This document shows positions 39,598-64,000 of a stretch of DNA of 64,000 nucleotides, in pieces. The DNA is from Lepidodermella squamata. Taxonomy: Eukaryota; Animalia; Gastrotricha. Every line of letters starts with the position of its first letter. Position 1 is the stretch's first letter. The position numbers were made by a program, and so were the translations under genes. The notes beneath the pieces are model-generated. The model worked only from the letters and a program-made list of their open reading frames with translations, did not search any database and was not told the DNA's origin. The stretch spans positions 8,531-72,530 of the forward strand of contig JBLDXI010000099.1 in the NCBI GenBank assembly GCA_047495785.1, given 5' to 3'.

Positions 39598-39632
39598 AGG
39601 TCCTGCCGAGAGTCGAACTCGGGTCGCTGGAT
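39598..39632 (-). pseudogene. 3' half of a tRNA-Gln gene, disrupted at the anticodon loop by an insertion
   Basis: aggtcctgccgagagtcgaactcgggtcgctggat aligns with the intact tRNA-Gln at 36900-36934 (aggtcccatcgagaatcgaactcgagtcgctggat); T-run terminator at 39587-39591; 5' half absent. Confidence 0.85.
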
Positions 39633-42600
39633 GGGGGCGCGATATGAGAGTTCCGAAGGAACGTAGTTCCTTACAAGTGTTTTACACATACGCCGTAGAT
39701 TACCACGAACGAAGTGAGATACCTTCCGAAAGGCACCCCCCGGGAACGAGTTGGTTAATAGGACATACTCAGATCAACTTACCCGATTTATGGTGGTATC
39801 CTGGACCCCTCAGGACCTCCCAGAAGTTTTTTCAGCTCAATCGGAGCTTCCGTTGATTTTCTAGAAATTAGGACGGTTTTTTCTTATTTTACCGTATTTT
39901 TTGGTCACGTGACCTGAAATGGGTAGTATATGAGGGGACAGTAGGAGGATATGATAGGTACACCAAAAAACAAACCACGCTGACCAAAGCTTCCCAGCCA
40001 GCTGACAGGCTGGCCCCTCGCCCCTGGGGGAGAGGGGCCCACAATAGATCAACAATGCAAGCTCGCGACTAAAGAGCAAACGACAAAAAGGCAATATAAA
40101 TAAAATGCAAGGTCAATTGAAAAGACGTGAGGCAAATAAATTGTGAATTATGCATTTAAAGCAACAGAATTACCCGTAATCGACTACGGAGAATCCGAAT
40201 ACGACATTCATTTTGTTAAAGCAATGATAATCCAATGATAATCACTTCAACAAATTTCGCGCTCGAGCAGCTGCGTTACGGACTACGGAGAATCCGAATA
40301 TGACATTTATTTCATTATCGAAATATGATAACCCATGATAACCCTTCAAACCATTTTCGCCCTCCTTTTACCCACTTTCGCCGCGCCACTTGCGTATTTT
40401 CACCACGAGTTGCGTATCTTTCACCACCTAACAACTTACGACGCATCACTGTTGAGGTAAGAAACTTCGAACAAGCACTTCAAATTATGCGCCACATCGA
40501 CCCATCGACATCGAGCTGCGTATCGCTGAGGACCATCTCATCATTGTTGTAAATTCAGTCATTCATGTACACTGATGATTGTTATACGTTATACGTATGT
40601 GTTCCTTGTGATATGAGTTCTTTGAGAACCTTGTGGAATATGTGTTAAACGTGATTCACCACAAAAGATCCGCCTTGAAACACAGCTAACTTACACTGCC
40701 TTTTTGTGTCCATTGCCATAGAAGGTGCATTTTGCACATTAATCTATGGGTTTACCCGTAATCGACTACGGAGAATCCGAATATGACATCCATTTTATTA
40801 TAAAGCAATCCTAACCCCATGATAATCCTTCCAATAATTTTCCAAAAATGTTCCGGCTCGCGCGGCTGCGCCGCACTCGCTGAAAGAGTTGCGTAACTTT
40901 AACCACCTTACAACTTAACGAATCCTCACCGATGAGGTAAGAAACTTGCAAGTGTGAATATGCACAGTTTCACATAGCAAAAACCAGCAAGTTGGACATG
41001 GCACCCCATTAAAAAACCAAATTAGCCAAATTAGCTGAACATGTTCTTTACGAAGAAATGTTTCATATTTCGACGTTTTCGTCATCAACAATTTTTTATA
41101 TTATTTAATTCAACCCTGCTTGATATTTTACAAACATTATTCGAAACTTCTAAGAAAGGTCCATAAAGTTTCACATTTCACAAAATGCATTTTTATTTTT
41201 CATTCATGCTACTACGAAGTACTAATGATAGCGCGGTACAATAACAAACACGTTGACATATGATATCTCAACGAAGCCGTCATTCACCAGATCTGGATAC
41301 GGAATCCTCGCCACTTAATTCAACGTTGATTAATATTTTGCAAACATTTTTCGAAACTTTTAAGTATCCCAGTAGGGTCCAAAAAGTTCAACATTTCCCT
41401 TGACAATACCCTCGGGAAGTAGCTGTAGCGCCAGTTTTTTCGAGCTGTACGGCTCTGTGATGCATTACTCAAATTTCGAACTCGTAAATGGGAGGGAAAC
41501 CAGATCCTTCACAACTTCACTGGTCTTCTTTTTATAACAAAATCATTCCATCCCATATCTTGCGTCACACGCCGCGTTCGCACGCGCATGATTGAGGTTG
41601 GAGGTCTTCGACTTTAAAATGATAACCCTACCAGCAATCCGTGCTAACGATTACGTCAGCCGGGAAAGTTCATCTTTTTCGGACCTTCATCAGCGGGAAC
41701 GATTACGTCTCATAAAAAAACTAGTTGTTCCCTTCCACGGTCCCGTATATTTCGCGTTGCAGAGATTGTGGATGTTCCCCAGGCAAAATTGAACTTTAAA
41801 GTACAAGTTCCCAACTGCCGTATCGCGCGGAATAATTACTGCAAAGGTTTACCTGCCATTCTCGTTATCACTTCTAAATAACGTAAAACAGTCTCGTATC
41901 AATTTCGTTGATTTTCGATTTTCACTACATTTAAGGAAAATATATAGTTGGTGCTTGACGTACCGAAAAATGAGTGTGTAGTCTGATTCAATGTTAGGGT
42001 TCGTATTGTTCGCTTTTAGAGCGGCGTCCTTTTCAAGCTTCACTTTCCGCCCCGTTCACTTTCAAAGGAAGGTCGAGGGTTCGAACCCAAGCTTTCGTTG
42101 AACTGCTCTCTAATGATTTCTGTCAACATGCTCTCGCTGTTGGCGATATTTGGTCATCGACTTCAATTCAACTTCAATTCAATCCTTGTCATTCAATTGT
42201 AACCTCAACAATTTGTTTTTCAAGAAATTACCGAAACTTCGGATAGTCGTTGGTTCGAACCCAAACCCTCGTTCAACTGCTCAGCAACGATTTCTTTCAT
42301 CCGTATGCTCTCAATCTTGGCGTTAACGTCGTTACCGAAATCGATTTACCTTGTACATGTTATTCAATCGCACCCTGCTTGAATTAGTATGCCAATTTTT
42401 TGAAAATTTAAAAGTTAAAAGGTCGAGGTTTCGAACCCAAGCTTTCGTTGAACTGCTTTGTGATGATTTCGTTCTCCTTCATGCAGCCAGAAGCTCTTGA
42501 CGTCTAAATGCTCTCGTTTTCGGCGTCAACGTCATTACCGAGATCGATTCAGTTTGTACATTCAATCGCTCCCTCCTTCAATTTTTATAACAATCTCGTC

Positions 42601-45600
42601 ATCAGTGACATGGATTCTACCAATTCATGTCATTCAATTGTTACCCCGATTAATTTTTACAACAAACCTATCGAAACTTCGAAACTTAACTTAAATTATA
42701 TTATCCAACCTTCATGTTTTGTTATTTGCGTTCTCGTCATCAGTGTCATCGATTCTCCCAATTCATGTCATTCAGTTGTTACCCCGATTAATTTTTACAA
42801 CAACCTCTCGAAACTTCGAAACTTTAGCTCAAACCTTCTTGTTTTGTTCTTTTTGCGTTCTCGTCATCAGTGACATGGATTCTACCAATTCATGTCATTC
42901 AATTGTTACCCTGATTGTTTTTTTACAACAAACTCTCGAAACTTCGAAACTTCAAAACATGGTCGTGGGTTCGAACCAGATTTCTCCTTTTTCTACTCAT
43001 CAATTTGTTCTTTAACCTTCACGCATTCGTTGTTGGCGTTTTCGTCATCAGCTACATCGATTCTACCAATTCATGTCATTCAATAGTTCTTTTGTTTGTT
43101 TTTCACAACAAAGTCTCACTTCAAAACATGGTCGTGGTTTCGAATCCGATCTCTGGTCGTTCCGCTCTCAAATTTTATTCTTCAACCTTCCTGTTTTGTT
43201 ATGTGCGTACTCGTCATCAGTGACATCGATTCTCCCAATTCATGTCATTCAGTTGTTACCCCGATTAATTTTTACAACAAATTCTCGGAACTTCGAAACT
43301 TGACTTAAATTATATTATCCAACCTTCATGTTTTGTTATTTGCGTTCTCGTCATCAGTGACATCGATTCTCCCAATTCATGTCATTCAATTGTTACCCCG
43401 ATTAATTTTTACAACAAACTCTCGAAACTTCGAAACTTCAAAACATGGTCGTGGGTTCGAACCAGATTTCTCCTTTTTCTACTCATCAATTTGTTCTTTA
43501 ACCTTCACGCATTCGTTGTTGGCGTTTTCGTCATCAGCTACATCGATTCTACCAATTCATGTCATTCAATAGTTCTTTTGTTTGTTTTTCACAACAAAGT
43601 CTCACTTCAAAACATGGTCGTGGTTTCGAATCCGATCTCTGGTCGTTCCGCTCTCAAATTTTATTCTTGAACCTTCCTGTTTTGTTATGTGCGTACTCGT
43701 CATCAGTGACATCGATTCTCCCAATTCATGTCATTCAGTTGTTACCCCGATTAATTTTTACAACAACCTCTCGAAACTTCGAAACTTTAGCTCAAACCTT
43801 CTTGTTTTGTTCTTTTTGCGTTCTCGTCATCAGTGACATGGATTCTACCAATTCATGTCATTCAATTGTTACCCTGATTGTTTTTTTACAACAAACTCTC
43901 GAAACTTCGAAACTTCAAAACATGGTCGTGGGTTCGAACCAGATCTCTCCTTTTTCTACTCATCAATTTGTTCTTCAACCTGCACGCATTCGTTGTTGGC
44001 GTTTTCGTCATCAGCTACATCGATTCTACCAATTCATGTCATTCAATTGTTAACTCGATTTTACAACATCTTCTCGAAATTTTATGAAAGCGAATAAATG
44101 TTCAACTACTCTTTAACGTGCATTCTTCTCTAAATATTTCCAAGCCATTCAAAAATACGTTGGACGGTTCCTGAGCGAACCCGAAATTACTACTTATCTA
44201 TAAACACCTAATCCGGAGAACATTCAAATTTACAATTCAATTTCATGTTTCATCAACATTGGGGTGAGGGGGAAGCACCGTCCCCTCCAACGACGTGGAG
44301 GGGATCTCGTAGGGGTGGTTCGAGTCCGTACCCATTACCCAGGAGAGTAGAGAAAAAGAAAGAAAAGGCTAGCGCAGCGTAAGCCTTGTCGAACTCTCCT
44401 GGATGGGGGCGCGACTCTGGGAGTTCCGAAGGAATGGGGGCGCGATATGAGAGTTCCGAAGGAACGTAGTTCCTTACAAGTGTTTTACACATACGCCGTA
44501 GATTACCACGAACGAAGTGAGATACCTTCCGAAAGGCACCCCCCGGGAACGAGTTGGTTAATAGGACATACTCAGATCAACTTACCCGATTTATGGTGGT
44601 ATCCTGGACCCCTCAGGACCTCCCAGAAGTTTTTTCAGCTCAATCGGAGCTTCCGTTGATTTTCTAGAAATTAGGACGGTTTTTTCTTATTTTACCGTAT
44701 TTTTTGGTCACGTGACCTGAAATGGGTAGTATATGAGGGGACAGTAGGAGGATATGATAGGTACACCAAAAAACAAACCACGCTGACCAAAGCTTCCCAG
44801 CCAGCTGACAGGCTGGCCCCTCGCCCCTGGGGGAGAGGGGCCCACAATAGATCAACAATGCAAGCTCGCGACTAAAGAGCAAACGACAAAAAGGCAATAT
44901 AAATAAAATGCAAGGTCAATTGAAAAGACGTGAGGCAAATAAATTGTGAATTATGCATTTAAAGCAACAGAATTACCCGTAATCGACTACGGAGAATCCG
45001 AATACGACATTCATTTTGTTAAAGCAATGATAATCCAATGATAATCACTTCAACAAATTTCGCGCTCGAGCAGCTGCGTTACGGACTACGGAGAATCCGA
45101 ATATGACATTTATTTCATTATCGAAATATGATAACCCATGATAACCCTTCAAACCATTTTCGCCCTCCTTTTACCCACTTTCGCCGCGCCACTTGCGTAT
45201 TTTCACCACGAGTTGCGTATCTTTCACCACCTAACAACTTACGACGCATCACTGTTGAGGTAAGAAACTTCGAACAAGCACTTCAAATTATGCGCCACAT
45301 CGACCCATCGACATCGAGCTGCGTATCGCTGAGGACCATCTCATCATTGTTGTAAATTCAGTCATTCATGTACACTGATGATTGTTATACGTTATACGTA
45401 TGTGTTCCTTGTGATATGAGTTCTTTGAGAACCTTGTGGAATATGTGTTAAACGTGATTCACCACAAAAGATCCGCCTTGAAACACAGCTAACTTACACT
45501 GCCTTTTTGTGTCCATTGCCATAGAAGGTGCATTTTGCACATTAATCTATGGGTTTACCCGTAATCGACTACGGAGAATCCGAATATGACATCCATTTTA

Positions 45601-48600
45601 TTATAAAGCAATCCTAACCCCATGATAATCCTTCCAATAATTTTCCAAAAATGTTCCGGCTCGCGCGGCTGCGCCGCACTCGCTGAAAGAGTTGCGTAAC
45701 TTTAACCACCTTACAACTTAACGAATCCTCACCGATGAGGTAAGAAACTTGCAAGTGTGAATATGCACAGTTTCACATAGCAAAAACCAGCAAGTTGGAC
45801 ATGGCACCCCATTAAAAAACCAAATTAGCCAAATTAGCTGAACATGTTCTTTACGAAGAAATGTTTCATATTTCGACGTTTTCGTCATCAACAATTTTTT
45901 ATATTATTTAATTCAACCCTGCTTGATATTTTACAAACATTATTCGAAACTTCTAAGAAAGGTCCATAAAGTTTCACATTTCACAAAATGCATTTTTATT
46001 TTTCATTCATGCTACTACGAAGTACTAATGATAGCGCGGTACAATAACAAACACGTTGACATATGATATCTCAACGAAGCCGTCATTCACCAGATCTGGA
46101 TACGGAATCCTCGCCACTTAATTCAACGTTGATTAATATTTTGCAAACATTTTTCGAAACTTTTAAGTATCCCAGTAGGGTCCAAAAAGTTCAACATTTC
46201 CCTTGACAATACCCTCGGGAAGTAGCTGTAGCGCCAGTTTTTTCGAGCTGTACGGCTCTGTGATGCATTACTCAAATTTCGAACTCGTAAATGGGAGGGA
46301 AACCAGATCCTTCACAACTTCACTGGTCTTCTTTTTATAACAAAATCATTCCATCCCATATCTTGCGTCACACGCCGCGTTCGCACGCGCATGATTGAGG
46401 TTGGAGGTCTTCGACTTTAAAATGATAACCCTACCAGCAATCCGTGCTAACGATTACGTCAGCCGGGAAAGTTCATCTTTTTCGGACCTTCATCAGCGGG
46501 AACGATTACGTCTCATAAAAAAACTAGTTGTTCCCTTCCACGGTCCCGTATATTTCGCGTTGCAGAGATTGTGGATGTTCCCCAGGCAAAATTGAACTTT
46601 AAAGTACAAGTTCCCAACTGCCGTATCGCGCGGAATAATTACTGCAAAGGTTTACCTGCCATTCTCGTTATCACTTCTAAATAACGTAAAACAGTCTCGT
46701 ATCAATTTCGTTGATTTTCGATTTTCACTACATTTAAGGAAAATATATAGTTGGTGCTTGACGTACCGAAAAATGAGTGTGTAGTCTGATTCAATGTTAG
46801 GGTTCGTATTGTTCGCTTTTAGAGCGGCGTCCTTTTCAAGCTTCACTTTCCGCCCCGTTCACTTTCAAAGGAAGGTCGAGGGTTCGAACCCAAGCTTTCG
46901 TTGAACTGCTCTCTAATGATTTCTGTCAACATGCTCTCGCTGTTGGCGATATTTGGTCATCGACTTCAATTCAACTTCAATTCAATCCTTGTCATTCAAT
47001 TGTAACCTCAACAATTTGTTTTTCAAGAAATTACCGAAACTTCGGATAGTCGTTGGTTCGAACCCAAACCCTCGTTCAACTGCTCAGCAACGATTTCTTT
47101 CATCCGTATGCTCTCAATCTTGGCGTTAACGTCGTTACCGAAATCGATTTACCTTGTACATGTTATTCAATCGCACCCTGCTTGAATTAGTATGCCAATT
47201 TTTTGAAAATTTAAAAGTTAAAAGGTCGAGGTTTCGAACCCAAGCTTTCGTTGAACTGCTTTGTGATGATTTCGTTCTCCTTCATGCAGCCAGAAGCTCT
47301 TGACGTCTAAATGCTCTCGTTTTCGGCGTCAACGTCATTACCGAGATCGATTCAGTTTGTACATTCAATCGCTCCCTCCTTCAATTTTTATAACAATCTC
47401 GTCATCAGTGACATGGATTCTACCAATTCATGTCATTCAATTGTTACCCCGATTAATTTTTACAACAAACCTATCGAAACTTCGAAACTTAACTTAAATT
47501 ATATTATCCAACCTTCATGTTTTGTTATTTGCGTTCTCGTCATCAGTGTCATCGATTCTCCCAATTCATGTCATTCAGTTGTTACCCCGATTAATTTTTA
47601 CAACAACCTCTCGAAACTTCGAAACTTTAGCTCAAACCTTCTTGTTTTGTTCTTTTTGCGTTCTCGTCATCAGTGACATGGATTCTACCAATTCATGTCA
47701 TTCAATTGTTACCCTGATTGTTTTTTTACAACAAACTCTCGAAACTTCGAAACTTCAAAACATGGTCGTGGGTTCGAACCAGATTTCTCCTTTTTCTACT
47801 CATCAATTTGTTCTTTAACCTTCACGCATTCGTTGTTGGCGTTTTCGTCATCAGCTACATCGATTCTACCAATTCATGTCATTCAATAGTTCTTTTGTTT
47901 GTTTTTCACAACAAAGTCTCACTTCAAAACATGGTCGTGGTTTCGAATCCGATCTCTGGTCGTTCCGCTCTCAAATTTTATTCTTCAACCTTCCTGTTTT
48001 GTTATGTGCGTACTCGTCATCAGTGACATCGATTCTCCCAATTCATGTCATTCAGTTGTTACCCCGATTAATTTTTACAACAAATTCTCGGAACTTCGAA
48101 ACTTGACTTAAATTATATTATCCAACCTTCATGTTTTGTTATTTGCGTTCTCGTCATCAGTGACATCGATTCTCCCAATTCATGTCATTCAATTGTTACC
48201 CCGATTAATTTTTACAACAAACTCTCGAAACTTCGAAACTTCAAAACATGGTCGTGGGTTCGAACCAGATTTCTCCTTTTTCTACTCATCAATTTGTTCT
48301 TTAACCTTCACGCATTCGTTGTTGGCGTTTTCGTCATCAGCTACATCGATTCTACCAATTCATGTCATTCAATAGTTCTTTTGTTTGTTTTTCACAACAA
48401 AGTCTCACTTCAAAACATGGTCGTGGTTTCGAATCCGATCTCTGGTCGTTCCGCTCTCAAATTTTATTCTTGAACCTTCCTGTTTTGTTATGTGCGTACT
48501 CGTCATCAGTGACATCGATTCTCCCAATTCATGTCATTCAGTTGTTACCCCGATTAATTTTTACAACAACCTCTCGAAACTTCGAAACTTTAGCTCAAAC

Positions 48601-49236
48601 CTTCTTGTTTTGTTCTTTTTGCGTTCTCGTCATCAGTGACATGGATTCTACCAATTCATGTCATTCAATTGTTACCCTGATTGTTTTTTTACAACAAACT
48701 CTCGAAACTTCGAAACTTCAAAACATGGTCGTGGGTTCGAACCAGATCTCTCCTTTTTCTACTCATCAATTTGTTCTTCAACCTGCACGCATTCGTTGTT
48801 GGCGTTTTCGTCATCAGCTACATCGATTCTACCAATTCATGTCATTCAATTGTTAACTCGATTTTACAACATCTTCTCGAAATTTTATGAAAGCGAATAA
48901 ATGTTCAACTACTCTTTAACGTGCATTCTTCTCTAAATATTTCCAAGCCATTCAAAAATACGTTGGACGGTTCCTGAGCGAACCCGAAATTACTACTTAT
49001 CTATAAACACCTAATCCGGAGAACATTCAAATTTACAATTCAATTTCATGTTTCATCAACATTGGGGTGAGGGGGAAGCACCGTCCCCTCCAACGACGTG
49101 GAGGGGATCTCGTAGGGGTGGTTCGAGTCCGTACCCATTACCCAGGAGAGTAGAGAAAAAGAAAGAAAAGGCTAGCGCAGCGTAAGCCTTGTCGAACTCT
49201 CCTGGATGGGGGCGCGACTCTGGGAGTTCCGAAGGA
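39631..49236 (+). repeat. Tandem duplication of a 4,803 bp non-coding unit (39631-44433 and 44434-49236); probable non-autonomous rolling-circle element copies
   Basis: ORF track repeats identically at offset 4803; no credible protein; each unit starts atgggggcgcgatatgagagttccgaagg. Confidence 0.9.
42065..44090 (+). repeat. Complex tandem repeat of ~125-180 bp subunits containing B-box-like GGTTCGAACC (second copy 46868-48893)
   Basis: Repeated cgtcatcagtgacatcgattctcccaattcatgtcattca...cgaaacttcgaaac...ggtcgtgggttcgaacc. Confidence 0.85.
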
Positions 49237-50032
49237 ACGCCAGTTCCTTTACACGTGTTTTACACATACGCCGTAGATTACCACGAACGAAGTGAGATTT
49301 CATCCCAACAGGGGGGCCCGAGAACGCGTTGGTTAACAGGACATTCTCCGATGAAGCCGCCCGATTTATGGTAGTATCCTGGACCCCTCAGGACCTCCCA
49401 GAAACTTTTTCAGCTCTAACGGACCTTCCGTTGATTTTCTAGAAATTAGGACGGTTTTTTCCTATTTTACCGTATTTTTTGGTCACGTGACCCGGAATGG
49501 GTAGTATATGAGGGGACAGTAGGAGGATATGATAAGGACACCAAAAAACTAACCACGCTAACCAGAGTATCCAAGCCAGCTGACAGGCTGGCCCCTCGCC
49601 CCTGGGGGAGAGGGGCCTACAATAAATCAACAATGCTAGCTGGCGACCAAAGAGCAAACGACGAAAAGGCAATATACGTAAAAGTCAAGGTCAATTGAAC
49701 AATTCTGCGGCGAATAAATTGTGCATTTTCCATATACAACAATAGGTTTACATGTAATCGACAACGGAGAATCCGAATATGACGTTCATTTTGTTATGAA
49801 GCAATTATAACCCAATGATAGCCCCTCCAACTAATTTTTCTGTTCACTGCTATGGAGTTGGCATGGTTATATTTTTTATTAAATAACATAATGCAGTTCA
49901 AGTTTCAGGGCTCGAAGTTTTAAAGCACATTTTCAAGTGAGCGGTTCAATAACGCACTGTCTTATTTCCATATTCATATGCATGCGCAGAAACAAAAAAA
50001 AATAATAATAACAATAAAAAATTAAAAGAAAA

Positions 50033-50108
50033 TGTGTCGCGGCCGGGACTCGAACCCTCCATTAACTGCATTTCACAACGTTACACTGAAACCACTCGGC
50101 CACAACAC
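50033..50108 (-). ncRNA. tRNA-like Pol III small RNA gene (non-canonical)
   Basis: Reverse complement GTGTTGTGGCCGAGTGG (A box)...GGTTCGAGTCC (B box)CGGCCGCGACAC; ~12 bp terminal stem, then T-runs; no proper anticodon stem. Confidence 0.5.
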
Positions 50109-50841
50109 ATCTGACATATCCATCGCAAATTAAATTTCAATTAAATATTCAACGAAATTATCAAAACAGTTTCCAGCGCCTTCCGGGAATCGGACGCGTC
50201 TCTATATAATTTATTCACTATATAATTCGCTACGCAGTGGTTCGGAAGGCAGTGGTTCGATTGCTGCTCACATCACATTTTTCCTTCTCATTTTTTCTTC
50301 TTAAAATCAGATTTATTTCTGTTTAATTTTTTTGCAGAGTGAGCAATAAAAAATAAACGTTTACCATTCACGTGAATCTTCATGAGTACAAAGTGCATGC
50401 CTGTCATATGGCCGACACGCGATTCAGCATCAGCTGTTTCACGGCGCAGCGGCGGCAACAGCAAGCAGACGGTTCGATCCGGTATTCAACCATCATTCAC
50501 AACGATTTATTTCTCTTCAAAACAACCTCTATTTCCCTAATCATTAGAATTACTTATGCTGCCAGCTCCTATCAATCTATCTTCCGCTCGAATCGATAAC
50601 ATTGTGACAATGTTGCTCTCTCAGGTTTGCTAGTATATTATTCCCAGTTCATATCACCATTCCCACTATAATTACAGCTACTGGATGAAATGGCGATTTC
50701 AACACTGTTGTCCACTTTGGTTTTCCATGGTCACTACTCCCTACCAGAAAGCGGTGAGTACATTATTTTCCTCATTCATTTTTTTTACTATTGTAAAATT
50801 TATTGATTTTTTCATTCATTAACACGTTTTTTTTGCTCCCC

Positions 50842-52785
50842 AATATTTTCTTTCGTCGTTATGCTCCCGTATTCGACGTTTTCGCCATCAGCAACGTCGA
50901 TTCCACTAATTCATGTCATTTAATTTTACCCTGATTTACTTTTTTCAAGAATTTTTTCAAACTTTGAAATTCCAAACCAAGGTCGTAGGTTGGTGCCCGA
51001 CCTCTCATTTTTTCGCCCTCAAATATTTTCTTTCATCGATATGCTCCCGTTCTCGACGTTTTCGCCATCAGCAACGTCGATTCCACTAATTCATGTCAAT
51101 TAATTTTACCCTGATTTACTTTTTTCAAGAATTTTTTCAAACTTTGAAATTCCAAACCAAGGTCGTAGGTTGGTGCCCGACCTCTCATTTTTTCGCCCTC
51201 AAATATTTTCTTTCATCGATATGCTCCCGTTCTCGACGTTTTCGCCATCAGCAACGTCGATTCCACTAATTCATGTCAATTAATTTTACCCTGATTTACT
51301 TTTTTCAAGAATTTTTTCAAACTTTGAAATTCCAAACCAAGGTCGTAGGTTGGTGCCCGACCTCTCATTTTTTCGCCCTCAAATATTTTCTTTCATCGAT
51401 ATGCTCCCGTTCTCGACGTTTTCGCCATCAGCAACGTCGATTCCACTAATTCATGTCAATTAATTTTACCCTGATTTACTTTTTTCAAGAATTTTTTCAA
51501 ACTTTGAAATTCCAAACCAAGGTCGTAGGTTGGTGCCCGACCTCTCATTTTTTCGCCCTCAAATATTTTCTTTCATCGATATGCTCCCGTTCTCGACGTT
51601 TTCGCCATCAGCAACGTCGATTCCACTAATTCATGTCAATTAATTTTACCCTGATTTACTTTTTTCAAGAATTTTTTCTAACTTTGAAATTCCAAACCAA
51701 GGTCGTAGGTTGGTGCCCGACCTCTCATTTTTTCGCCCTCAAATATTTTCTTTCATCGATATGCTCCCGTTCTCGACGTTTTCGCCATCAGCAACGTCGA
51801 TTCCACTAATTCATGTCAATTAATTTTACCCTGATTTACTTTTTTCAAGAATTTTTTCAAACTTTGAAATTCCAAACCAAGGTCGTAGGTTGGTGCCCGA
51901 CCTCTCATTTTTTCGCCCTCAAATATTTTCTTTCATCGATATGCTCCCGTTCTCGACGTTTTCGCCATCAGCAACGTCGATTCCACTAATTCATGTCAAT
52001 TAATTTTACCCTGATTAACTTTTTTCAAGAATTTTTTCAAACTTTGAAATCCCAAACCAAGGTCGTAGGTTGGTGCCCGACCTCTCATTTTTTCGCCCTC
52101 AAATATTTTCTTTCATCGATATGCTCCCGTTCTCGACGTTTTCGCCATCAGCAACGTCGATTCCACTAATTCATGTCAATTAATTTTACCCTGATTTACT
52201 TTTTTCAAGAATTTTTTCAAACTTTGAAATTCCAAACCAAGGTCGTAGGTTGGTGCCCGACCTCTCATTTTTTCGCCCTCAAATATTTTCTTTCATCGAT
52301 ATGCTCCCGTTCTCGACGTTTTCGCCATCAGCAACGTCGATTCCACTAATTCATGTAAATTAATTCTACCCTGATTTACTTTTTTCAAGAATTTTTTCAA
52401 ACTTTGAAATCCCAAACCAAGGTCGTAGGTTGGTGCCCGACCTCTCATTTTTTCGCCCTCAAATATTTTCTTTCATCGATATGCTCCCGTTCTCGACGTT
52501 TTCGCCATCAGCAACGTCGATTCCACTAATTCATGTCAATTAATTTTACCCTGATTTACTTTTTTCAAGAATTTTTTCAAACTTTGAAATCCCAAACCAA
52601 GGTCGTAGGTTGGTGCCCGACCTCTCATTTTTTCGCCCTCAAATATTTTCTTTCATCGATATGCTCCCGTTCTCGAAGTTTTCGCCATCAGCAACGTCGA
52701 TTCCACTAATTCATGTCAATTAATTTTACCCTGATTTACTTTTTTCAAGAATTTTTTCAAACTTTGAAATTCCAAACGAAGGTCA
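50842..52785 (+). repeat. 180 bp tandem repeat (~10.8 near-identical copies)
   Basis: Sequence lines recur every 180 nt (ttcgccatcagcaacgtcgattccactaat...). Confidence 0.97.
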
Positions 52786-53039
52786 TTTTTTTGAATTTTA
52801 GAATTTCGGAAATTTATATTAGCATTTCATTTTTTTTTATTTTTTCTCTTTTTTACCAGTTTGCGAATCGAATGACCGATGTTGCACATGCTGTAATCAA
52901 ATGGCTGAAAACGATTTCAAGACGAAGTGATTTGTGATTTTTCAAACGTGCTACTTCATTTGAACGTTGTTTACCAGCTTTGCTGTATGATGCTTTTTAA
53001 ATTATATTGTTCCAAACCCCATTTTCGCTGACCCAGGCA

Positions 53040-53325
53040 GTAATAGGGTAGAGATGCCGTCTCAATGCCCGGCTATGCAGTTAAATAGCCAACCGACGTT
53101 GGAATAGTCGGTATAAACTTCCACCGTCCCGGCTCAGACGGCGAAAACGACCACGTCTTGGTGAGACGGTAAAAAAAACTCCGACAAGGCAAGGTCGGTA
53201 AAAAACTTCCAAAATGTCCGCAGGGCTGAGCGACCAGCGCCCTCACTGTGATTCGTCACAAATACTAAGCTGGAAGGGAACCTATGACGATCTGTCAGGC
53301 ATCTTCGGATCCGAGGTTTCTCCCC
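53040..53325 (+). ncRNA. Unclassified, highly structured RNA (or ssDNA) element upstream of the RepHel gene
   Basis: At least eight adjacent GC-rich hairpins, including two UUCG tetraloops, within AT-rich flanks. Confidence 0.55.
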
Positions 53326-53484
53326 GATATTTCAATTATTGATGTGCATTGGTAATTTCAATAAAATATGTTTTTCATTTCAATATATTTTTTTTAATTG
53401 ATGTTCTTCATTCCATTCGCATATGGTGTTATTTTTTATTTATCTAGTTTTATGATGACAATTTTGTGATTATGAACTGGAATC

Positions 53485-56400
53485 ATGGTGAAACCGCCTA
53501 ATTGGAAGCCAAAATCGAAGGGATCGCGTAAGTGTTCCTTTTGCAAACGGAAAGGTGTTCGAATCTCAACCCACTGCGGACTACTCAATTGCTCTAAAGC
53601 TAAAGGGCAACACCATCCCAAGCCGTGCATTAAGGTTCAACCTCCACAGTCCGCTTCTCAGTCCAATTGTATGTTTTCCTAATCAATCAGTTATATATGT
53701 TTCATCTGTTTTTACACAGCCACGTCGTGTTCGCATGTTGGCGAATCTTTATCGGTAGCTCCATCCTCACTCACTGTTCAGAATACGTCTCAGCAGTCGT
53801 TGATATCTCAAGGCTTGTTCTTGTTATTCATCCTCAAATTGTATAAATTTGCGATAAAATTTCCCCATAGGTAGCGGCGCTGTTCTGACTGCTTCGGAGC
53901 AATTGTTGGATTCTCAAGGTCAGTAATTTTTATTTCTCAACTATAACTTGACATGTGGCTGTGCCGTTCCAGCTGTTCCGGCTACCCGGGAAGATCCGCT
54001 GCCACCTCCGGGTTAGTTGTTAGATTGAGATTTATTTCATGTCTTGAGCGAATACCACTAAGCTCTTTTAAGAATTATAAGAATTGAAGAGGTGTTAACA
54101 TATGATTGTTATGTCATTTAGTCTTGTCAAATAATATTTTCAGGCGCTTCTTTGAACGAACGGCAGGAATCTAGCGCGCCTGCAACACGTCAGCCAGTAA
54201 CTCAGCCATCTTGTCCAGTATGCGGCGCAAAAGGCAGGAAGTATCTGACCCACTGCGACAATGAGGAATGCCGGATTAGTGGCCGCGGGCATCACGCTAA
54301 TCCCTGTTTCCAGTTGGAACGACCCGGGCTACAGGCCGGTGTAAATCTTGAGCAGCAACGTAAGTATTATCCACCGGGTAACAACCTTTCATAAATAATG
54401 ATTCATTTAGCTGTGGCGTCCTCTGGAGCTGTTGCTGCTACGTCACAACGGTCGCTGCCATCTATAGGTTAGTTATTTAATCAAGAATTGTGCTGCCTGG
54501 TGTTAACTAAAACTGCTGTTTGTTGCAGCTAGTGGTGGTTCTTCTAATGCACCTATTCTATGTGACAACTGCAGAAGACGATCGGTGCCCTTTTTCGACA
54601 TCGACATTGCTGTCGTGGAAGAGCCGGTATCTGGACGCAGCTATGGTGCTCTAGGACTAAGGAAAGTCTATGAAAACTGCTCGTTATGCCGTTGTTGCCG
54701 TCACTATTTGCGCAACGGCGATGCTCGTTTTCCCGCCGGATGGCCAGCCCTTGTTTATAGCCTTTTCTTCAAAGCAGCGAATAGGCACCTAGCAGAGGCC
54801 CTCTCTAACTACATATCGCCGCTCATGAAAATGATGTGGAGCGAGGTCGACGGCTCAAATGTTATGCGGGACTCGCAGCCGTGTTTCGTTGACAAGACAC
54901 GTGATCTGGCTGATTTCATGGCCAATATCTACAAAGACGCAGGTATTCTATCAACCTACTAAATGAGTATACGAATGCAGTTTTTTTTTTAATTGCAGGA
55001 GGATTCAGTTACGCGCTAAACATGTACCCAGTGCCCGACGTGATATGTCCGCAAGGTTGCCTCGCTTTCATGGAGAAGTGCCAGCTAATCCCGTACCATC
55101 ATTTGATCCAACATGTCACTGGCAGCAATTTCTTCGATTCCGACTTGCGCTGGTTCGAGTCAAGGAGACCCGACTGGCCGTGCAACCCAGTGCCTTTCCT
55201 CGCTTGGGATTTCGCTGCTGCAATGGTCATGGACGAGACAAAGGGCCTATGCATCCTTGCCTGCATTGACCACAGCAAGCCGGACCTGTTTTCCATGTAC
55301 CTGCATCTCCCTGCGAATCCCGAGTTCGACCGGTTCCACGATCCGCAGCAGACCGAAATCTATGCACCCGTGCACGTGCAGCCCAATTTCGTCAGAGGCG
55401 GGCGAGTCGGTCAGTCGAACGCATCAGTGCCAGTGACAAAAACTCTGGGTGATCAATTAGGTGTCGGCAGCTTTACATTGCGTGGTGCTCACTCGGCAAA
55501 TCGCAAGGCTTTGAGCATGTACGCCAGCGCCTTTAAGCCACACCTTTTGGCCTTGCGATATCGTCCTGAGATTCGCAACACCGCGATCAGCAGATTTGGC
55601 GAGGAACACGTGGCTCACGTTCTTGCTGATTTTGATCAGCATTGCCCAACTGCTGTCGTGAGAAACCATGTCAAGGGTGGCACTTTCATCGAGCTAGCTG
55701 ACTGTTACTTCACCTGGGCTATTCGCCGCAAAATCGCGACAGGTCAGTACATTTCATTCTTAATCTACTACTATAGATTAGACTCAACAGAATTAGCACT
55801 GCATTAATTTTGCTGATAGTGATAGCCTTGTAATCGGGCCCTGCACTGAATTTTAGATGCGTTTTGTCCAATATAAAATTCTCCAATATAAATGGTCAAA
55901 GAACGGATGTAGCAACTGTAGTAGAGTATCGCGCGGGATAACCACTGCAAATTATTATGTAGTGTACTTCGGGAGGATAAGATTAGGCCGATCGAACTGC
56001 TCCAAATTCTCGATATAATAAACAAATATAGAGATACTAAGATTCAAGCGCATTAACAATTCATCATCGATTCCTACGAATTGTCTCATTTCGTCCTTCT
56101 TTATTTTAGGAAGTGATTCGTCGAAAAAAGGGAAAACACCTTCAGAAGCCGTGATCTTCAATCCGGTTCACCCGAACGATGATCATGGCTTAATCCCCTG
56201 GGCGTTCAAGTCGGGTCAAGGCGACAACCCTAGTCAGCTCCTGACACTGGTTGCCAACGTCGTTTCGTTGTGCCGCCCTGTGTACCGTGCGGCGTTGAGT
56301 CATCTAGTGCTTGGCAGTCCCGATTTAACACGCGTCGACATCGGTGACTTGCTCAGTCATACTGTTTCGCTGCCGCGCCCGAAAACCCCTCGTACTCTGA

Positions 56401-59400
56401 ATTTGTCGCATCTGGCAAGGGACTTCTGGTCACTGACAGAACCCGAAAGTGATAGCGGATCTGACGATGACGAAGAATCCCCCGATGTCGTTACGCGGGC
56501 ATTAACTTTGATTGGGAGAGTTACTGCGCCGATTAATGATGTCGAGTTGTCGTTTGCTGGATCTCATCTTTTAGCGATAAGAAAGGGGCAAACCATGGAC
56601 GGCGAAAGAAGGAGTCTCCGAAGTCATGGTGAGTGTTTTATTCATATTTTGGCAATTATTGCTGCATTATTAGACGTTGTGGTGATACATATCATGATCT
56701 TGGGTCCTGAATTTCAAAATTTACTGGTTTTAATCAAAAATTGAAACAACAAAAAATTGAGGGCTCCCATTCAAGTTATAATGACGTAAATCTTGAAATA
56801 TTGAGTAATTTTCAAATCGTTTGATTCATACCTAGATAACCCTTGTTTATTTCGTGTTGACAGTGGGTAGGGTGCTGGTCATCCACGGAGGTCAATCTCA
56901 GCTGCTGACCGAATACCAGACTTCGCATGAGCTGCTGATGTGCCGACCCGAAGGTGCCTTGCCGATCAATTGGCCCGCATTGCCCTTGTCGCTGAAAGCT
57001 GGTCATCACCTGCTACTTGCCCGCGTCAAGTTTGGCTCGAAATCCTACATCGTTTTTCGATGGTCGCCTAGCTTCAGTGGCTGGTGGACAGTAGAGCCTA
57101 GCGGGCGAGTGGTTCGTGGTGTCAGTGATCAGCACATGCGCTCTGACGTCCAATTTGCGATTTACGCTCTGCCTGGCAACCAGACGTTCTGCAATCAAGC
57201 CGTCCGTCAATCGCTCGGTGGTCAAAGCAAGGCTGCCTGCGAAATGCATTTCGACTCTGTCGAGTTCAACTTCACTCTTATGAAAGTGCCGGTGAAACAT
57301 AAGGTGAAGTGTTGCATGCGATCACCGGGAAGAGCCAATCAATGCGGCAAACCTGCTCAGTTGCGCTGTCCTGCGGGCTTGCAGAATGGCAGCTTGTCGT
57401 GCAGTGTCGGCATCTGCACGCGGTGCTTCAAGAAGCTTCCAGCGGACGGTATCACCAAGCTCTCAGCGCCTGACTTTCTGCCTGATGTGCCTGAAGATGC
57501 TGAATTGCAACTGTCAGCTAGCAGGGCATCGAACTTGGAAGCTCAAGCCGACGAGGTTCCGCCGCAGCCTGAGCAGCTTCATTTGGCTACTGATATTCAA
57601 TTTCCTCGAGGCGATGCTGAGCCGCTGTATGATCCGACCAAGGGTATTCTCGCCAAGTATCTCTGGCAGCACTTGGGAATTCTGCAGCGAACCAGGCTCG
57701 CTTTCGATTCTGCCCAGAAGTCTTTTCTACTGCAGCAGATGGTTGCCTTCGGAGATGCCCCTGCTACTTCCATCTTGTACCCGGAGGGTGCTCTGTTTCC
57801 GTCACTTTTCTATTGCCAACGTGATGGCAGTGTTGTTGGTGCTTTGCCTCACCATCACTACTCGTCCTACAACTCCGACTATACAGGTGGAATCGGCTCC
57901 CTGTCTGATCATGTCAAAGTCAGGTTGCGCAACTTCTTCTTGGCAACAAGCTGGTCGTTTGCGTCAATCTACTTCTCCTTTGACATGAAGCTATCGGCGC
58001 AGCTGAACAAAAACAGCACTGCAATCTTCATGAAGCGTGGGACAGAAGGCCTGGCAGGTAAAGGCGCTGTTGGCTGGTCTCCTCCTGGCACGGCTCTCGA
58101 ATACGAGGAGTTCGACAAGGAGTCGAGGCTGAAAGAGCTTGGCGCCCTAATCAAGCATGAAGAATGGAAGTGGTTCGGGACAATTACTTGTAATGATACA
58201 GGTTAGCACAAGTTTTGGTATTCAATCTCACTCAATTGTAGACTGAATAATTTCTCCAAGAATTGTTTGAAATTTGAAATTTTACCACCTCGACCTACAC
58301 AATGCATTATTTTTCAATTCCAGGCACACCTGGTGTATGTGAAATCGTCAAAGCCCTTATGATAAACGCTCAAAGGCACCATGGTCCACGCCCTGTTCTG
58401 TCGAAGGCCGACTATCAGCGAACTTTTCGTCAGCGTCTGCTCCTTGTTTCAAGGCTTGACGAGACCGAGTACAAGCGGCTGTACTACGCCCATTTCATCC
58501 TCATCAGCATGGCTTGGCAACGAGTGCAGGAGCATCTGATCGAGTTCCTGAAGCGCACGAATGTTGTTGGCACTGTCACCACTATTTTCGTCAGGAACGA
58601 ATTTCAGAGCGAATCACTCGTTGGCAACAAAAGTCATCTGCATATGGGCATTTCAGTACGCGAAAGCCGGGCAGAACTGCTGGAGAAAGTTTGCTGTGAT
58701 CCTCGTGAATTCTTCTCGGAGCGGTACGGCACGTCATTCGACGAGCTTCAGCGCTTGAGGTTGGTCGAGAGCCGAGATCACTTCGAGCTGCTCAAGGAGG
58801 TCCATTACCCCTTCCAACGTCACGAATGCGAGAAAGCGTTTTGGAAATGTCAAGTTCCACGCGGCGAAGGAGGGGAAATGGTTTGCCGAGTTCGCCAGCA
58901 CGGCGTCTCCAGCAGCGGCTATTTCGAAGAATTCCGCAACGTGTACTCCGAGGATACCCTGAAAGAGCTGCAATCCCTAGACCTCGCCAGAGAAGTGCCC
59001 AATCCCACTGGCGACTTTGACTGGGAATTTCTGGCTGATCAGCTCAAGTCGGGCGTGTACCACTACGCGATCAAGCATCTCGAGAAGGGCGTGAAGTTCA
59101 TTCCGCAAATCCCGATCATCGCGGCAATGATGGGCGGCTCCACGAACTTTCAGATATGCGATTCTCATTTCAGCGTATCTTACCTGACGAGCTACGTTGC
59201 CAGCTCCGACGCTCGCCCTGAAGCTTACGCTGCAACGACAGATGTTCCGGGCCAAGTCGTTGCTTTGTTCCCTGCTGGTTTTGAGCGAGGTCAAAAGCTT
59301 GCTAGTGTTCGGTGAGTAATATCTTTGCACTTCAATTGACTTGAAAAACTTTGATGTTTTTAGGAAAGTGATGGAAGCGAAGCTGAAGCATTTCCGTCGA

Positions 59401-62400
59401 GAAAGCATGCAGAGCTTTATCTTCATCGCCTTGACAGAAGTTGCTTGGTTCGCGTTGGGGTTTCCCTACACCATCACGAATGTCGGTTTCGTACACATCA
59501 ACACACACCCACCAGCTTCGCGGCTAATGTTGTGGCGACCGAAAGAAGCAGTGAAAAAGCGACTACCGGGTATGCTCTTGAGAATAGTTATTGTGATTAT
59601 TTTCAAATAATATTCCAAAAACAGGTACAGATGTAGTTGCTGTCGACCCAAACTACAATCGCCGGGGCCTGCCTCAGTGGCGCTTGTTCACGGAAGCATG
59701 CATTCGTCTGATCATGAAAATGAGAGGCACGAATCTGCTAGCTGGCCCTGTCGAGAAGTTCGAGATTCGACCTCCCGAGGCTCGTATCTTTGCGTCACCT
59801 GCTATCTATCACGCGGTGTTCGTCATCGACCGGAAAAACCGACGACCATACAACCCGATGGTCGATCCTTACATCCGTTTTTTCGACGGCTTCAAGCGGG
59901 AGGTCCGAATCAACGATTGCAGTTTGCGCATCGCGCTCGACTATCTGGCTCAGCAGGACCAATCCAATGCAGCCGTTCAAGCACTCACGGAAATTTTCGA
60001 ACTCTTGGTCGAAGGCGATCCTGTCTATGTTGACCGGTAACGATCTTTACGTTTTTATAATTTTCGGAATATTTCAAATGTACGCTGAACTAGGTACTTG
60101 CACGTCACAAATAAGGCGGCGATAATTCCAGTCCTATCCACCATCTCTCCGCTCAACCGCTTCAACTTCTTGTATCACGTCGTCATGACGTTTGGTCGAA
60201 TCGAAGATGAGGCTACTACCTTTCCGGCTGGGCATCTCCGGGCGGCATTTGTTCGATCGGGGCTCATTCGGGTCAATCCTGAAGGCGAGCCGACCAACCT
60301 TCCTGCCGACGTGAGGTCTCTGAAGCGTCGCGTCATTCTCGAAATCTTCGCTTTCCTGCCAATCGGTGTCAAGAGATTCGATTTTTACGTCGCCACTCTG
60401 AAATCCATGTTCGAGCAGTTTTTCTTTGGCGATGGAGGCACCGACAATCTCTCGGCACTGACTGACTGGGATGCGATTGAACGGGAAGTTGACGAGGATA
60501 TTGTCCGAGCGGAAGGAGAAATGAAGCGGTCTGTGGTTGAGGTGACGCATTCGCAGCTTGTCGGGAAATTGCCGCTACCACCGCTGTCGGATTTCACTGA
60601 CGCTACATCGTGTCAACCTTTGGAATGGATTCCGAGTCTTCAACGACAACCAGGTCAGTCGGACCAGTCTTTCCAGGAGCAGCAGGCGGCTCTGGCTTTC
60701 GGTATGAAGACACTCGAACGCTTCCGAAGCAGAGCTAGCTTCAAGCACATCGCACTGGTTGGTCCTCCTGGGGCTGGAAAGACAACGCTGGCGCAGATCC
60801 TTGCCATGGTTGCCGTTTCTAAGGGACTACGAGTTGTCATTACTGCTTTGACCTCGGAGCGAGCACGAGTTCTTGGCGGTCGGCACATCCACCTGCTTTT
60901 TCCTTTGCCGGTTAAGCAAATACCGTACAAAAATGTAATGGCGTATGCTGACGGCTGCCTCAAGAATCTGTGTTTCAAGACTACGCCGTCTGTTGTCCTA
61001 TATCGGGCTGACGTCTTCATCATCGAAGAAATTGGGCTGGTCTCTGCTGAAACCCTGGAAATCTTGGACACAGTTATGAGGAGTCTTACAGGTAAGCAAA
61101 CCAGCATTCAATTATTACTGGTATTTATAGTTTTCATTAGGAGTCGATGCGAAAATGGGTGGCAAATTGATCATTGCTACCGGGGACTTTGCTCAGCTCG
61201 AGACGATCAATGGTGAGAGTTGATTTATTGCAATACTAACATGTATATTGTATTTGTTTTTTTTAATTATCCCAGGTCGATCCTTTTGGGAATCAACACA
61301 ATTGTACCTCAGCTACGACGTCGCATTGTTGAAACATTTCGTTCGGGCTGCCACTGACCCGCTACTCCAGCGGGTGCTGTTGATTTTGCGGCAAGGCGTT
61401 CTTGACGAGATTGACCGGGACTTCATCCTCAAAGCTGTGACTAGAACGTGCAACTTTTACGACACTTGGGACAACGTTCCGTTCCTTGTCCAGCGGATCG
61501 TCCCAACAAGAGAAGCTGAACAAGAGGTTAGTTGGAAACGGAAAATTTTGGTGATCACTCTTGCCTTTCATTAATTGATCAGGTCATTCGGAAGTTCCTG
61601 CAAGACGCTAGTCTCAGTGGCAAGACTTTGAAAACAGCTCTATGCATCGACGAAGTAAACACGCGTGGTGCCTGGGAACCTCTTCACCGTCCCGAATGGA
61701 AAAAAGCTATCAACAAACAGTCACTCAAGCCCGAGAACTTAACGCTCTTTGTTGGTGCTGTGGTTGCTATGACCTACAATCACGTAGCGTCGAACCCGCA
61801 ACACTCCTTCTCCCAAGGGCAGCTAGCTCTGGTGACGCAGTTGCCGGAAGACATGGCCGCACCGGATGCCAAAATTTCTGTCCGCTTGGTTCCTCCAGGG
61901 CTGCGTGACATTGCACCAGATGAGGCTTGGCCAGAAATAAGTGTGGGCCGGCATCGGGACGATAACATTGTTGTTGGCGACAACAAAACGCACCTGCGTC
62001 GTGTTCAGTTTCCGCTGCGGCATTACATTGCCTCGACTATTCATCGTGAGTGCTAACCTTGTTTTTATATTCAAGTATATAAAAATGTTAATTGTTTTCA
62101 GGAATCATGGGTTCTACCTGCGAGAACGGCGTTGCAGCCAAGATTGCTTCCAACGAGAAGGTACGTATTGCGAACAATAACTGTGGATATTGATATGTTC
62201 AATGTACTGTAATGAAGGGCTACGTGCTATGGGAACGGGCGCAGCTTGCTGTCATTCTCTCGCGGTGCCGTTCACTTGACCGTGTGTCATTTGTTGGCGA
62301 ACGCGCAGACATCACTGTGGCCATCGAAAGGCTGTTGATGGCAGTCGATGAGCCATACGAGGCTATCGTCGCATCGCTGCAAACGCTGGACGTGCTGCCT

Positions 62401-63352
62401 ACCTCAACAGTCGCCAGTAACTGGTCAGCCGGACGACAGCAGCAGGTCAGCGACCCCGACGAACTGCCCGACATCACGTTCCGCGTTTTACGAACAACTT
62501 CCGGGTTAGTCCACTTACTTATTTGGCTCTTTGTATAGTCAACTCACTAATTGCGTATGTCCCATTATATATCGAGTCTTGACAGTTCATATTTCTATAA
62601 CCATTTTATTATATTTCAAAATAGAATAAGTCGAACGTTTTCAAGAAAATTTTTCTTATAGATCATTCACGATCGAGCAGCTTGGCGATGCTCAAACTTC
62701 CATCCCATTGTAAGTATGGCATTGTTCATCTGCTTTATATACTATTCAAAACTTCTTCATAGCCCTGCAACCGTTGACCAGGCAAGCTCCTCCGATGCGC
62801 CTGTTGTCCCACGGTTAGTATAACCTATCAATTCCATTTCATTGCTTCAAATTCTGCTCAATTTATCAGAGTGCCGACATTGTTGGACTTCTACCGCGTC
62901 GTCGGTCCTGATTTGTCGGAACGCGAGCCCAATGGCGTCGTTTATCAATTGGTGGAGGTGGCTCAGCCGTGGGCCAGCTACTTTGGCGAAACCGAGCAAG
63001 CGCCTCTACAGCGACTTTATGACCACAATCACAGTAAATACAAGAGAGACTAAAAAAATCGAACTGCTAACATTTGATTTCAGATGCAGGGGCCGCGATG
63101 ACTCGCGGCAAGCAATGGCATTTGTACGCCGTCGCTCGTGGCTTGCCTGATGACGAAACCAGGTTGAACCTGGAGAAAAGGTGCCAGGACCTAATTACAG
63201 CGCAACCTGAGCTTTTGCCGTGGCAAGTTAGGACCAAGTTTGAGTCCTACGTGGACGACATCAACGCTCGCCTGCATGGGTCCACTGCTGTAATTCGTTA
63301 CGGCGAGTTGGACGAGGCTAAGGTTCACCGCCTGCGTACGATCTCCTTGTGA
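53485..63352 (+). CDS. Large intron-rich RepHel-like transposase: Cys/His zinc motifs, HUH Rep endonuclease, Pif1/RecD-type SF1B helicase and C-terminal GIY-YIG nuclease (~2,600 aa; exact 3' end uncertain, may extend to ~63460)
   Basis: Rep motifs WFGTITCN, RNEFQ...SHLHM, QRHEC...C, NFQI...YLTSYVA. Helicase motifs GPPGAGKTT, IIEEIG, GDFAQL, QFPLRHYIASTIHRIMG, LAVILSR. GIY-YIG motif GVVYQL...YFGET...RLYDHN...GAAMT. More than 20 exons with GT-AG introns. Confidence 0.85.
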
Positions 63353-64000
63353 GTCAGCTGATGGATGTCATTCTTTTTACTCAATCCTTTCACTTTTCAG
63401 CACGTCGACAATTAGAGTAGCACCGGCGCCACCGTCAGCGCAAGAAGAAGCAGGTGAACTAATCGACCAAGATCCGCCCCCAAAGCGGTAAATAGATTTA
63501 AGTTCACATTTGCTTGTAGCTTTTTACTATTATTTTCAGAATTCATCTCGCAAATAATTGTTCGCCGTCTTGATGTTTCTGCCGATCTTCCGATAAATGA
63601 AATGTTCCAATTCAATGTTTTTCCTAGTAGTAGCCAATAAACGTATTGCACTTTTTCTAATAGTGTTTATTGAATCAGAGTTATCAGATCGACTTGACTT
63701 AATATGAATCAAATCGCCACGAAACCGTAATTTGTCTGATCCTTGTGCTTCGTCCATTATATAATTTTTCTAAAAGATTACCTAAGCTGATTGCCATGCT
63801 CTTGGCTCTGTGGCAACCGAACCATATTCATCTCACAAGTTGGCACTACAGTTGCTTCCGGAACCCACCATAAAGATGACAGGTCTTAGTTTCAAGTTTT
63901 TCCATTGCATCACCATTGCTAAATCAAAATCCATCAAATAAAAATGCTTCCCTGCGTAAATCTATAATTTCAAATCTTAATCACGGAAAATAAGGTTTAT

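Follow-up and report, generated by a model that had tools for sequence, protein, structure and literature searches.

Does a rolling-circle transposase that ends in a GIY-YIG nuclease exist as a single fused protein, and if so, does it stand alone? This question is raised by a gene at positions 53485–63573 (+ strand) of a 64,000-nucleotide stretch of DNA from the gastrotrich Lepidodermella squamata (contig JBLDXI010000099.1, positions 8,531–72,530; this stretch is hereafter the window, and all coordinates refer to it). The window is eukaryotic in character, with GT-AG introns of ~50–60 nt and T-rich acceptors ending in YAG. The gene encodes, from N- to C-terminus, a HUH Rep endonuclease, a Pif1-type helicase, and an SLX1-type GIY-YIG nuclease. 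It is intact and retains the catalytic motifs of all three enzymes, and transcription and splicing are seen for its 3' half at least. The gene is very probably the transposase of an autonomous rolling-circle (Helitron-like) transposon and a member of a distinct lineage whose proteins always end in an SLX1-type GIY-YIG domain.

One gene for Rep, helicase, and nuclease

In the simplest full model, which is frame-continuous, the gene has ~24 exons and 7,944 coding bases (2,647 residues), and its introns are 49–367 nt in length, every one of them GT-AG. Rep, helicase, and GIY-YIG all fall within one spliceable frame of the + strand, in which every motif quoted in an initial annotation of this DNA was found. 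The 3' part of the model was built on two requirements, GT-AG introns and an open frame, and runs from 56864 to the stop codon at 63571–63573 (16 exons, 1,906 codons). The upstream exon chain (54144–58201) is open over 1,095 codons, and the exons within 53485–54011 are predicted, with several alternative joinings and an ambiguous splice pattern. Across ~1,600 residues the exons are colinear with related proteins.

Splicing was assessed in a public sequencing run available as contigs (X1), whose status as RNA is a guess backed by its spliced joints. X1 contained 22% of sampled words in 58.0–63.4 kb, as compared with 9% in 53.4–58.2 kb, and its contigs on 57900–63850 were 99–100% identical to the window and had nine GT..AG joints. 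Three of the corresponding introns lie in the helicase part (61092–61140, 61527–61582, and 62161–62217), three in the linker part (62505–62661, 62710–62762, and 62814–62869), and three in the nuclease and terminal part (63034–63083, 63349–63400, and 63488–63539). The joints chain the last helicase exons to two linker exons (62662–62709 and 62763–62813), both GIY-YIG exons, and two terminal exons (63401–63487 and 63540–63573). The contigs are short, with no single record reaching from helicase to nuclease; because the in-frame joints form an unbroken chain, we place the two domains on one transcript. The GIY-YIG exons are thus tied to the helicase exons and very probably do not constitute a separate gene, in agreement with the fusion described in the initial annotation. 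Joints in X1 labeled as lying on opposite strands look like contig-assembly artifacts and were set aside.

Two details of the initial annotation required correction. The gene does not end at 63352, as two further exons joined by RNA-supported introns carry it to the stop codon at 63571–63573. Nor is the long open reading frame (ORF) at 60098–61216 coding throughout; it contains a real intron (61092–61140), and the spliced sequence yields the helicase motif GGKLIIATGDFAQL. An AATAAA is located at 63636–63641, and RNA contig coverage ends by ~63670. Small minus-strand ORFs (73–79 amino acids) at 63412–63757 overlap the last exons and the 3' untranslated region.

The HUH Rep core (58138–59311) was delineated by phmmer, by an alignment of the lineage (A1, 32 sequences), and by a profile match to Helraiser. 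Motif 1 (WFGTITCN, 58171–58194) is followed by an intron (58202–58323). The HUH motif RNEFQSESLVGNKSHLHM occupies 58593–58646, with its H-L-H at 58635–58643, and appears in A1 as EFQ...SHLHM (58599–58646). The tyrosine motif YLTSYVAS (59181–59204) supplies catalytic tyrosines at 59181–59183 and 59193–59195, and a His/Cys zinc-type insert occurs downstream of H-L-H. These motifs of the L. squamata copy (WFGTITCN, EFQSESLVGNKSHLHM, and YLTSYVAS) correspond to a lineage consensus of YFxTLTCN; RxEFQS..GNxPHVH; H.C...RC...CRVP; and STNVQxCD..F..YLxKY, in which the Glu, the two His, and the first of the Tyr residues do not vary across A1. The HUH fold called in the initial annotation holds up: among solved structures, the Rep family profile matched one, Helraiser (PDB 7LCC), at motif 1 and at the HUH and Tyr motifs (E 6e-4), with motif 1 aligned to LFITMTCN of Helraiser, and relatives pass the Pfam family Helitron_like_N (PF14214; cut-off 28.9 bits, P0004 at 31.8 bits; precomputed matches in 16 of 25). 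No match to PF14214 was found in the ORFs of the window at E<=1. Both peculiarities that the initial annotation had noted in these motifs are present and extend beyond this copy. The insertion in motif 2, which consists of 2–4 residues in the pattern EFQS-xx(xx)-GN-x-PHVH, characterizes the lineage as a whole, and the YxxSY that takes the place of YxxKY also occurs in P0013, the tree neighbor of this copy. Because P0013 shares it, YxxSY does not appear to be a lesion of this copy.

The helicase is C-terminal to Rep in the same protein and frame, and is encoded by six exons (60650–62504), as defined by Pfam, a family profile, and RNA joints. It has a Walker A motif (GPPGAGKT, 60761–60784), a Walker B motif with the EE of FIIEEIG (61025–61030), and a motif III (GDFAQL, in the exon at 61141–61212) that becomes apparent only once the intron at 61092–61140 is removed. 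On the unspliced ORF, Pfam scores were 34 bits for AAA_30 and 23 bits for PIF1; PIF1 matches in relatives reached 1e-10 to 1e-12. The helicase profile of the lineage matched Pif1 structures at E 1e-28 to 1e-21 and Helraiser at 2e-25. These matches bear out the superfamily 1B (SF1B) helicase with an EE Walker B that had been described initially. EE is the rule in the lineage, with DE in about one-quarter of its members.

The nuclease (62870–63348, split by the intron at 63034–63083) is recognizable by alignment (A2), SLX1 profile, predicted fold, and the RNA-supported intron. Its motifs are GVVYQL (62934–62951), YFGET (62979–62993), and RLYDHN (63012–63029), and its catalytic positions are Tyr (62943–62945), Tyr (62979–62981), Arg (63012–63014), His-Asn (63024–63029), and the Glu of NLEKR (63173–63175). 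The consensus of the tails in A2 reads G.VY.L.S...Y.GET...RRL..HN.G.G...T...PW...GF...R..FE..W. In our own numbering of the alignment with structure 4XLG, positions 14, 26, 36, and 79 of Candida glabrata Slx1 correspond to VVY, YFG, the Arg of QRL, and the Glu of NLEKR. The tail profile matched this SLX1 structure at E 1.2e-11 and also matched bacterial UPF0213 proteins.

Since the intron divides the tail of the L. squamata protein, this tail was not modeled as one piece; the fold was instead predicted for the tail of the relative P0028, in whose alignment the two exon pieces of the window are included. This model had a predicted local distance difference test (pLDDT) score of 96, and its top 11 Foldseek matches in the PDB were all SLX1 or HIGLE, with a template modeling (TM) score of up to 0.76. 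By sequence profile and by the predicted fold of a relative's tail, the GIY-YIG domain proposed initially at the C-terminus is therefore of the SLX1 type, with its catalytic residues kept. Pfam recognizes GIY-YIG at E<=0.01 in 17 of 27 tails, and in this copy weakly and below threshold (E 0.05). The protein ends ~100 residues past the nuclease core in a Pro/acidic tail, which the terminal exons encode together with PPPKR and the stop codon. No RING/PHD finger was found after the nuclease core, in that this segment has no Cys cluster and no Pfam match. Because this finger is lacking, no SLX4 partner is expected.

Our domain calls rest on family profiles because Pfam misses Helitron_like_N and sees GIY-YIG weakly in this copy. 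The Pfam result on raw ORFs (P-loop matches and a sub-threshold GIY-YIG) was considered as evidence against the domains and dropped, as family profiles detect them.

A lineage defined by its nuclease tail

An exhaustive phmmer search with the Rep exon as query (1.84 billion cluster representatives, E<=1e-3) returned 125 related clusters at the 50% identity level. The best was 36% identical, many were 1,500–3,600 residues long, and ostracod, tunicate, and amphipod sequences were among them. An iterative hidden Markov model (HMM) of the tail detected the nuclease in 33 relatives at E <1e-16, and detected it partially in proteins truncated at that point. All 23 aligned relatives with at least 100 residues after the helicase have the GIY-YIG tail. 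Word-indexed searches with P0004 and P0124 returned only lineage members plus two outgroups. One of these, P0157, has OTU, Rep, PIF1, and Exo_endo_phos domains and is a typical Helentron, through which 119 relatives were retrieved; the other, P0156, has LFITMTCN-type motifs and is a canonical Helitron. The HMMs of the lineage scored 94–129 bits (helicase) and 25–53 bits (Rep) on Helentrons, and 89 bits (helicase) and 16+16 bits (Rep) on P0156.

Relationships were examined in an unrooted IQ-TREE phylogeny of Rep plus helicase (44 sequences, 772 columns), including 12 Helentrons, which were close ones only, and one Helitron. P0001 was omitted, as its predicted protein lacks motif 1. The 31 GIY-tailed proteins, that of L. 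squamata included, were set apart from the 12 Helentrons and the Helitron with an ultrafast bootstrap (UFBoot) value of 100, and the stem of the GIY-tailed group was similar in length to those of the other two groups. Because the tree is unrooted and includes only one canonical Helitron, we make no claim about sister groups. The split and the different Rep motif signatures bear out the earlier suggestion of a lineage distinct from Helitron and Helentron.

The signatures of the lineage are mixed. TCN and YLxKY resemble those of canonical Helitrons; the OTU domain, the position of the endonuclease, and the T^T target resemble those of group 2. As in Helentrons, in which an OTU protease is frequent at the N-terminus, the domain order is Rep, Pif1 helicase, and C-terminal endonuclease, an OTU domain occurs in some relatives (P0004 and P0052), and insertion took place here between T and T. 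The Rep and helicase profiles of the lineage also score Helentrons above the sole canonical Helitron sampled. Unlike Helentrons, however, in which the reference proteins have Exo_endo_phos (PF03372/PF14529), the lineage has a GIY-YIG nuclease of SLX1 type; it has TLTCN rather than TLSAAD, YLxKY rather than YVAAY, and an insert of 2–4 residues before the HUH histidines; and its proteins are not nested among Helentron RepHel sequences. With canonical Helitrons such as Helraiser (7LCC) it shares a TCN-type HUH Rep, a two-tyrosine motif of YLxKY type, and a Pif1-like helicase. Those elements have no extra nuclease, the protein here is ~1,150 residues longer, and neither 5'-TC and CTRR-3' ends nor an A^T target was found at this locus.

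The nuclease itself shares with SLX1, and with bacterial UPF0213/YhbQ, a GIY-YIG core with the signature RRLxxHN..G..T..PW. It differs from SLX1 in being fused to a transposase without a RING/PHD finger, and thus resembles the SLX1 nuclease core alone. Penelope-like retroelements provide an analogy, as they have a fused GIY-YIG where sister groups use an apurinic/apyrimidinic (AP) endonuclease. Penelope elements have a reverse transcriptase in place of the HUH Rep and helicase found here, and the present nuclease is closest to SLX1 in a comparison made outside the Penelope nucleases.

The architecture is not singular. It is that of a barely described lineage and is not unique to this locus, occurring in at least 125 clusters at 50% identity, and one earlier publication names a GIY-YIG domain in an element of the Helitron-like kind (PMC11417382). 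That mention, a single sentence in the 2024 description of HELIANO, concerns HelenSM92 of the moss Sphagnum magellanicum, a group-2 family with a 'captured' GIY-YIG (PMC11417382). HelenSM92 is reported to be Helitron-like with a GIY-YIG beside RepHel, as here (PMC11417382). This sentence was the only mention of GIY-YIG in such elements that we found, and no description of the lineage came up, in a search that did not extend to subscription papers and Repbase reports.

Upstream of Rep, the N-terminal region holds a lineage-specific Cys-rich domain of ~340 residues (54529–55742, exons 54529–54942 and 54999–55742). It was identified by tblastn with the N-termini of relatives (E down to 1e-31), by an alignment (A3) in which Cys, His, and Trp columns are near-invariant, and by an AlphaFold model with pLDDT >90 over residues 10–240. 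Foldseek against the PDB yielded no structural neighbor of this model, nor did the ESM Atlas (TM no higher than 0.30) or VIA-align wide (best Z of 2.3), and the domain was not detected in 121 Helentron-group proteins. It is a candidate DNA-recognition module. Two copies of a Cys/His motif, CxxC-x10-HC-x4-C-x6-HH-x3-C, precede it (53533–53628, in predicted exon 1, and 54212–54307, in the exon at 54144–54359). These were read from translation without RNA support, have no Pfam match, and occupy the N-terminus, where some relatives have an OTU protease. Between the Cys-rich domain and Rep, an acidic low-complexity exon (56110–56628), not conserved in relatives, was assigned solely by its good splice sites and open frame.

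The element and its insertion into tRNA-Gln

The gene lies within an element whose upstream part (49208–53484, + strand) comprises a head, GGGGGCGCGACTCTG, a 180-bp satellite, and a leader before the ATG, as delimited by repeat families D1 and D8–D9 and by junction sequence. The head (GGGGGCGCGA...) directly follows CTGGAT, and this left junction is exact to the base, with CTGGAT abutting GGGGGCG. The satellite, between head and gene at 50828–52927, consists of 11 copies with 96–100% identity.

Immediately upstream are two non-autonomous units of 4,772 nt each (39633–44404 and 44436–49207), which were identified by repeat comparison, as was the stretch that separates them (44405–44435), a mere 30-nt head start like that of the third head, followed by a T. 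The head starts GGGGGCGCG, and the non-autonomous units end in ...CTCCTGGAT, with CTGGAT at the terminus. Over the heads tested, units 1 and 2 are 100% identical to each other and 80–89% identical to the third head. The result is a head-to-tail array (39598–49240) of half a tRNA-Gln, unit 1, the 30 nt and T, unit 2, and the autonomous head. Its period of 4,803 nt resembles what read-through or re-insertion in rolling-circle transposition would give. The units have related repeats of their own (42552–43914 and 47355–48717), spaced at ~127–181 bp and ~64% alike. Their right-end region, at 44310–44345 in unit 1, contains a T-arm-like GGTTCGAGTCC and a tRNA-like stretch, GTCGAACTC, just before the terminal CTGGAT.

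The array opens inside the half tRNA-Gln (39598–39632), which itself ends in CTGGAT. By comparison with an intact gene at 36899–36972, the head at 39633 splits tRNA-Gln between T and T of the anticodon loop; the other half was not found in the window. Nearby, 21 tRNA genes are densely clustered on the two strands (35750–39514), among them near-identical tRNA-Ala(AGC) copies spaced at 3,096 nt. Each of the three heads (39633, 44405, and 49208), two of which are internal junctions, directly follows CTGGAT. Because every head in the window follows CTGGAT, the tRNA-Gln site can be explained without tRNA structure, and a short word read by the transposase is a more economical account of it than the suggestion in the initial annotation that GIY-YIG may nick a hairpin-forming tRNA gene. 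In IS91-type elements, the target word is likewise the word at the element end. At the other side of the gene, no right end of CTNGAT type was seen by eye in 63574–64000, and the element may conceivably have further cargo past the window end at 64000.

Other copies were sought in a DNA run (X2) that is the probable source of the assembly; its contig depths were not used as copy number. X2 contained extra contigs ~6% diverged, as well as deletion derivatives. One deletion (58652>60417) removes 1,764 nt from Rep into the pre-helicase region, and another removes 97 nt of an intron (58222–58320). Of 20 listed exon differences between copies, a small sample, 14 are synonymous. Because this share is far above the neutral expectation, the copies appear to be under protein-level constraint.

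Alternative explanations, proposed mode of action, and significance

Three other explanations of the locus were weighed. The one that survives best, improbable as we consider it, is that this copy died recently, being open by chance, catalytically impaired, and mobilized, if at all, by other copies. The substitutions in two motifs (YLTSY against YLxKY, and GDFAQLETI against GDxxQLPPI) would fit such a copy, as would the non-conserved or ambiguous nature of some 5' exons; yet ~7.9 kb of coding sequence runs over ~24 exons without a stop or frameshift, the metal-binding and nucleophile residues are all present, and the gene is transcribed and correctly spliced.

We find it less credible still, and quite unlikely, that the gene was domesticated by the host from such a transposase and is now immobile. 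An intact frame, expression, and mostly synonymous differences between copies are what a domesticated gene would also exhibit, and the change of Lys to Ser in the Tyr motif could mean that strand transfer was lost. Against this, the Ser variant is common to P0013, the gene is inside a repeat-bounded element whose head is homologous to two adjoining non-autonomous units, and X2 has both diverged copies and internal-deletion derivatives.

The weakest explanation, that the GIY-YIG exons belong to a gene of their own farther downstream or are the captured passenger of one element, has very little to recommend it: the domain is indeed set off from the helicase by an intron of 157 nt and a pair of tiny linker exons, Pfam is weak on the domain in this copy (E 0.05), and the GIY-YIG of HelenSM92 was described as captured (HELIANO, PMC11417382), but six consecutive RNA joints lead in frame from the helicase exon at 62218–62504 to the nuclease exons with no stop or start between, and the fusion recurs at the same position, with catalytic residues kept, in at least 33 relatives that are only 25–35% identical.

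We thus favor a transposase of an autonomous rolling-circle element, though several points weigh against it. Mobility and enzyme activity are read from sequence, and the role of GIY-YIG is inferred. In place of the Lys of YxxKY, present in >90% of relatives, this copy has Ser, and its QLETI corresponds to QLPP(I/V) in relatives. RNA and splice support stops short of the 5' third of the gene (the 9% of sampled words in X1), and the RNA label of X1 was guessed, although its spliced joints argue for RNA. The right end of the element lies outside the window, beyond 64000.

For a transposase of this kind, a mode of action may be proposed by analogy with Helraiser and IS91-type elements. The Rep tyrosines would cleave the strand to be transferred after CTGGAT, both in the target and at the end of the element, and the Pif1-like helicase would peel this strand off in the 5' to 3' direction. 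The strand would then be rejoined after a CTNGAT word elsewhere, which at this locus would have been at a T-T step within the tRNA-Gln anticodon loop. The GIY-YIG domain, by ancestry a structure-selective nickase, would most likely act at the donor or target, cutting either the opposite strand or an intermediate with a branch or flap. Such a cut would let second-strand synthesis start, the same job that is presumed for the AP endonuclease of Helentrons. It is plausible, though short of an even chance, that the specific role of this SLX1-like domain is to nick the complementary strand, or else a flap or branch, and in so doing to prime second-strand synthesis or open a duplex target.

A broader proposal is more doubtful and is offered as speculation. 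The GIY-YIG-tailed proteins might constitute, alongside Helitrons and Helentrons, a third major group of HUH-helicase transposons in eukaryotes. In it three parts would act in concert, with the second-strand or branch cut made by the SLX1-like nuclease, DNA recognized by the Cys-rich N-terminal domain, and CTNGAT read by Rep in the target as well as at the element end. If this were true, these transposons would be short-word-specific integrators, able to enter the anticodon loops of tRNA-Gln and to build head-to-tail arrays.

How Helitron-like elements handle the second strand and double-stranded targets is still unclear, as is the role of the AP endonuclease of Helentrons. The presence of a different, structure-selective nuclease in the same place in a deep and diverse sister-type lineage suggests that the extra nick is a needed step and not baggage. 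Retroelements offer a parallel, with AP endonucleases in long interspersed nuclear elements (LINEs) and GIY-YIG in Penelope elements. Elements of the present kind are probably under-counted because standard Pfam thresholds miss both Rep and nuclease in this copy. The lineage provides a second, independent system in which the extra-nick idea may be tested, and the L. squamata copy is a natural, intact, and expressed one with a left end that is exact to the base.

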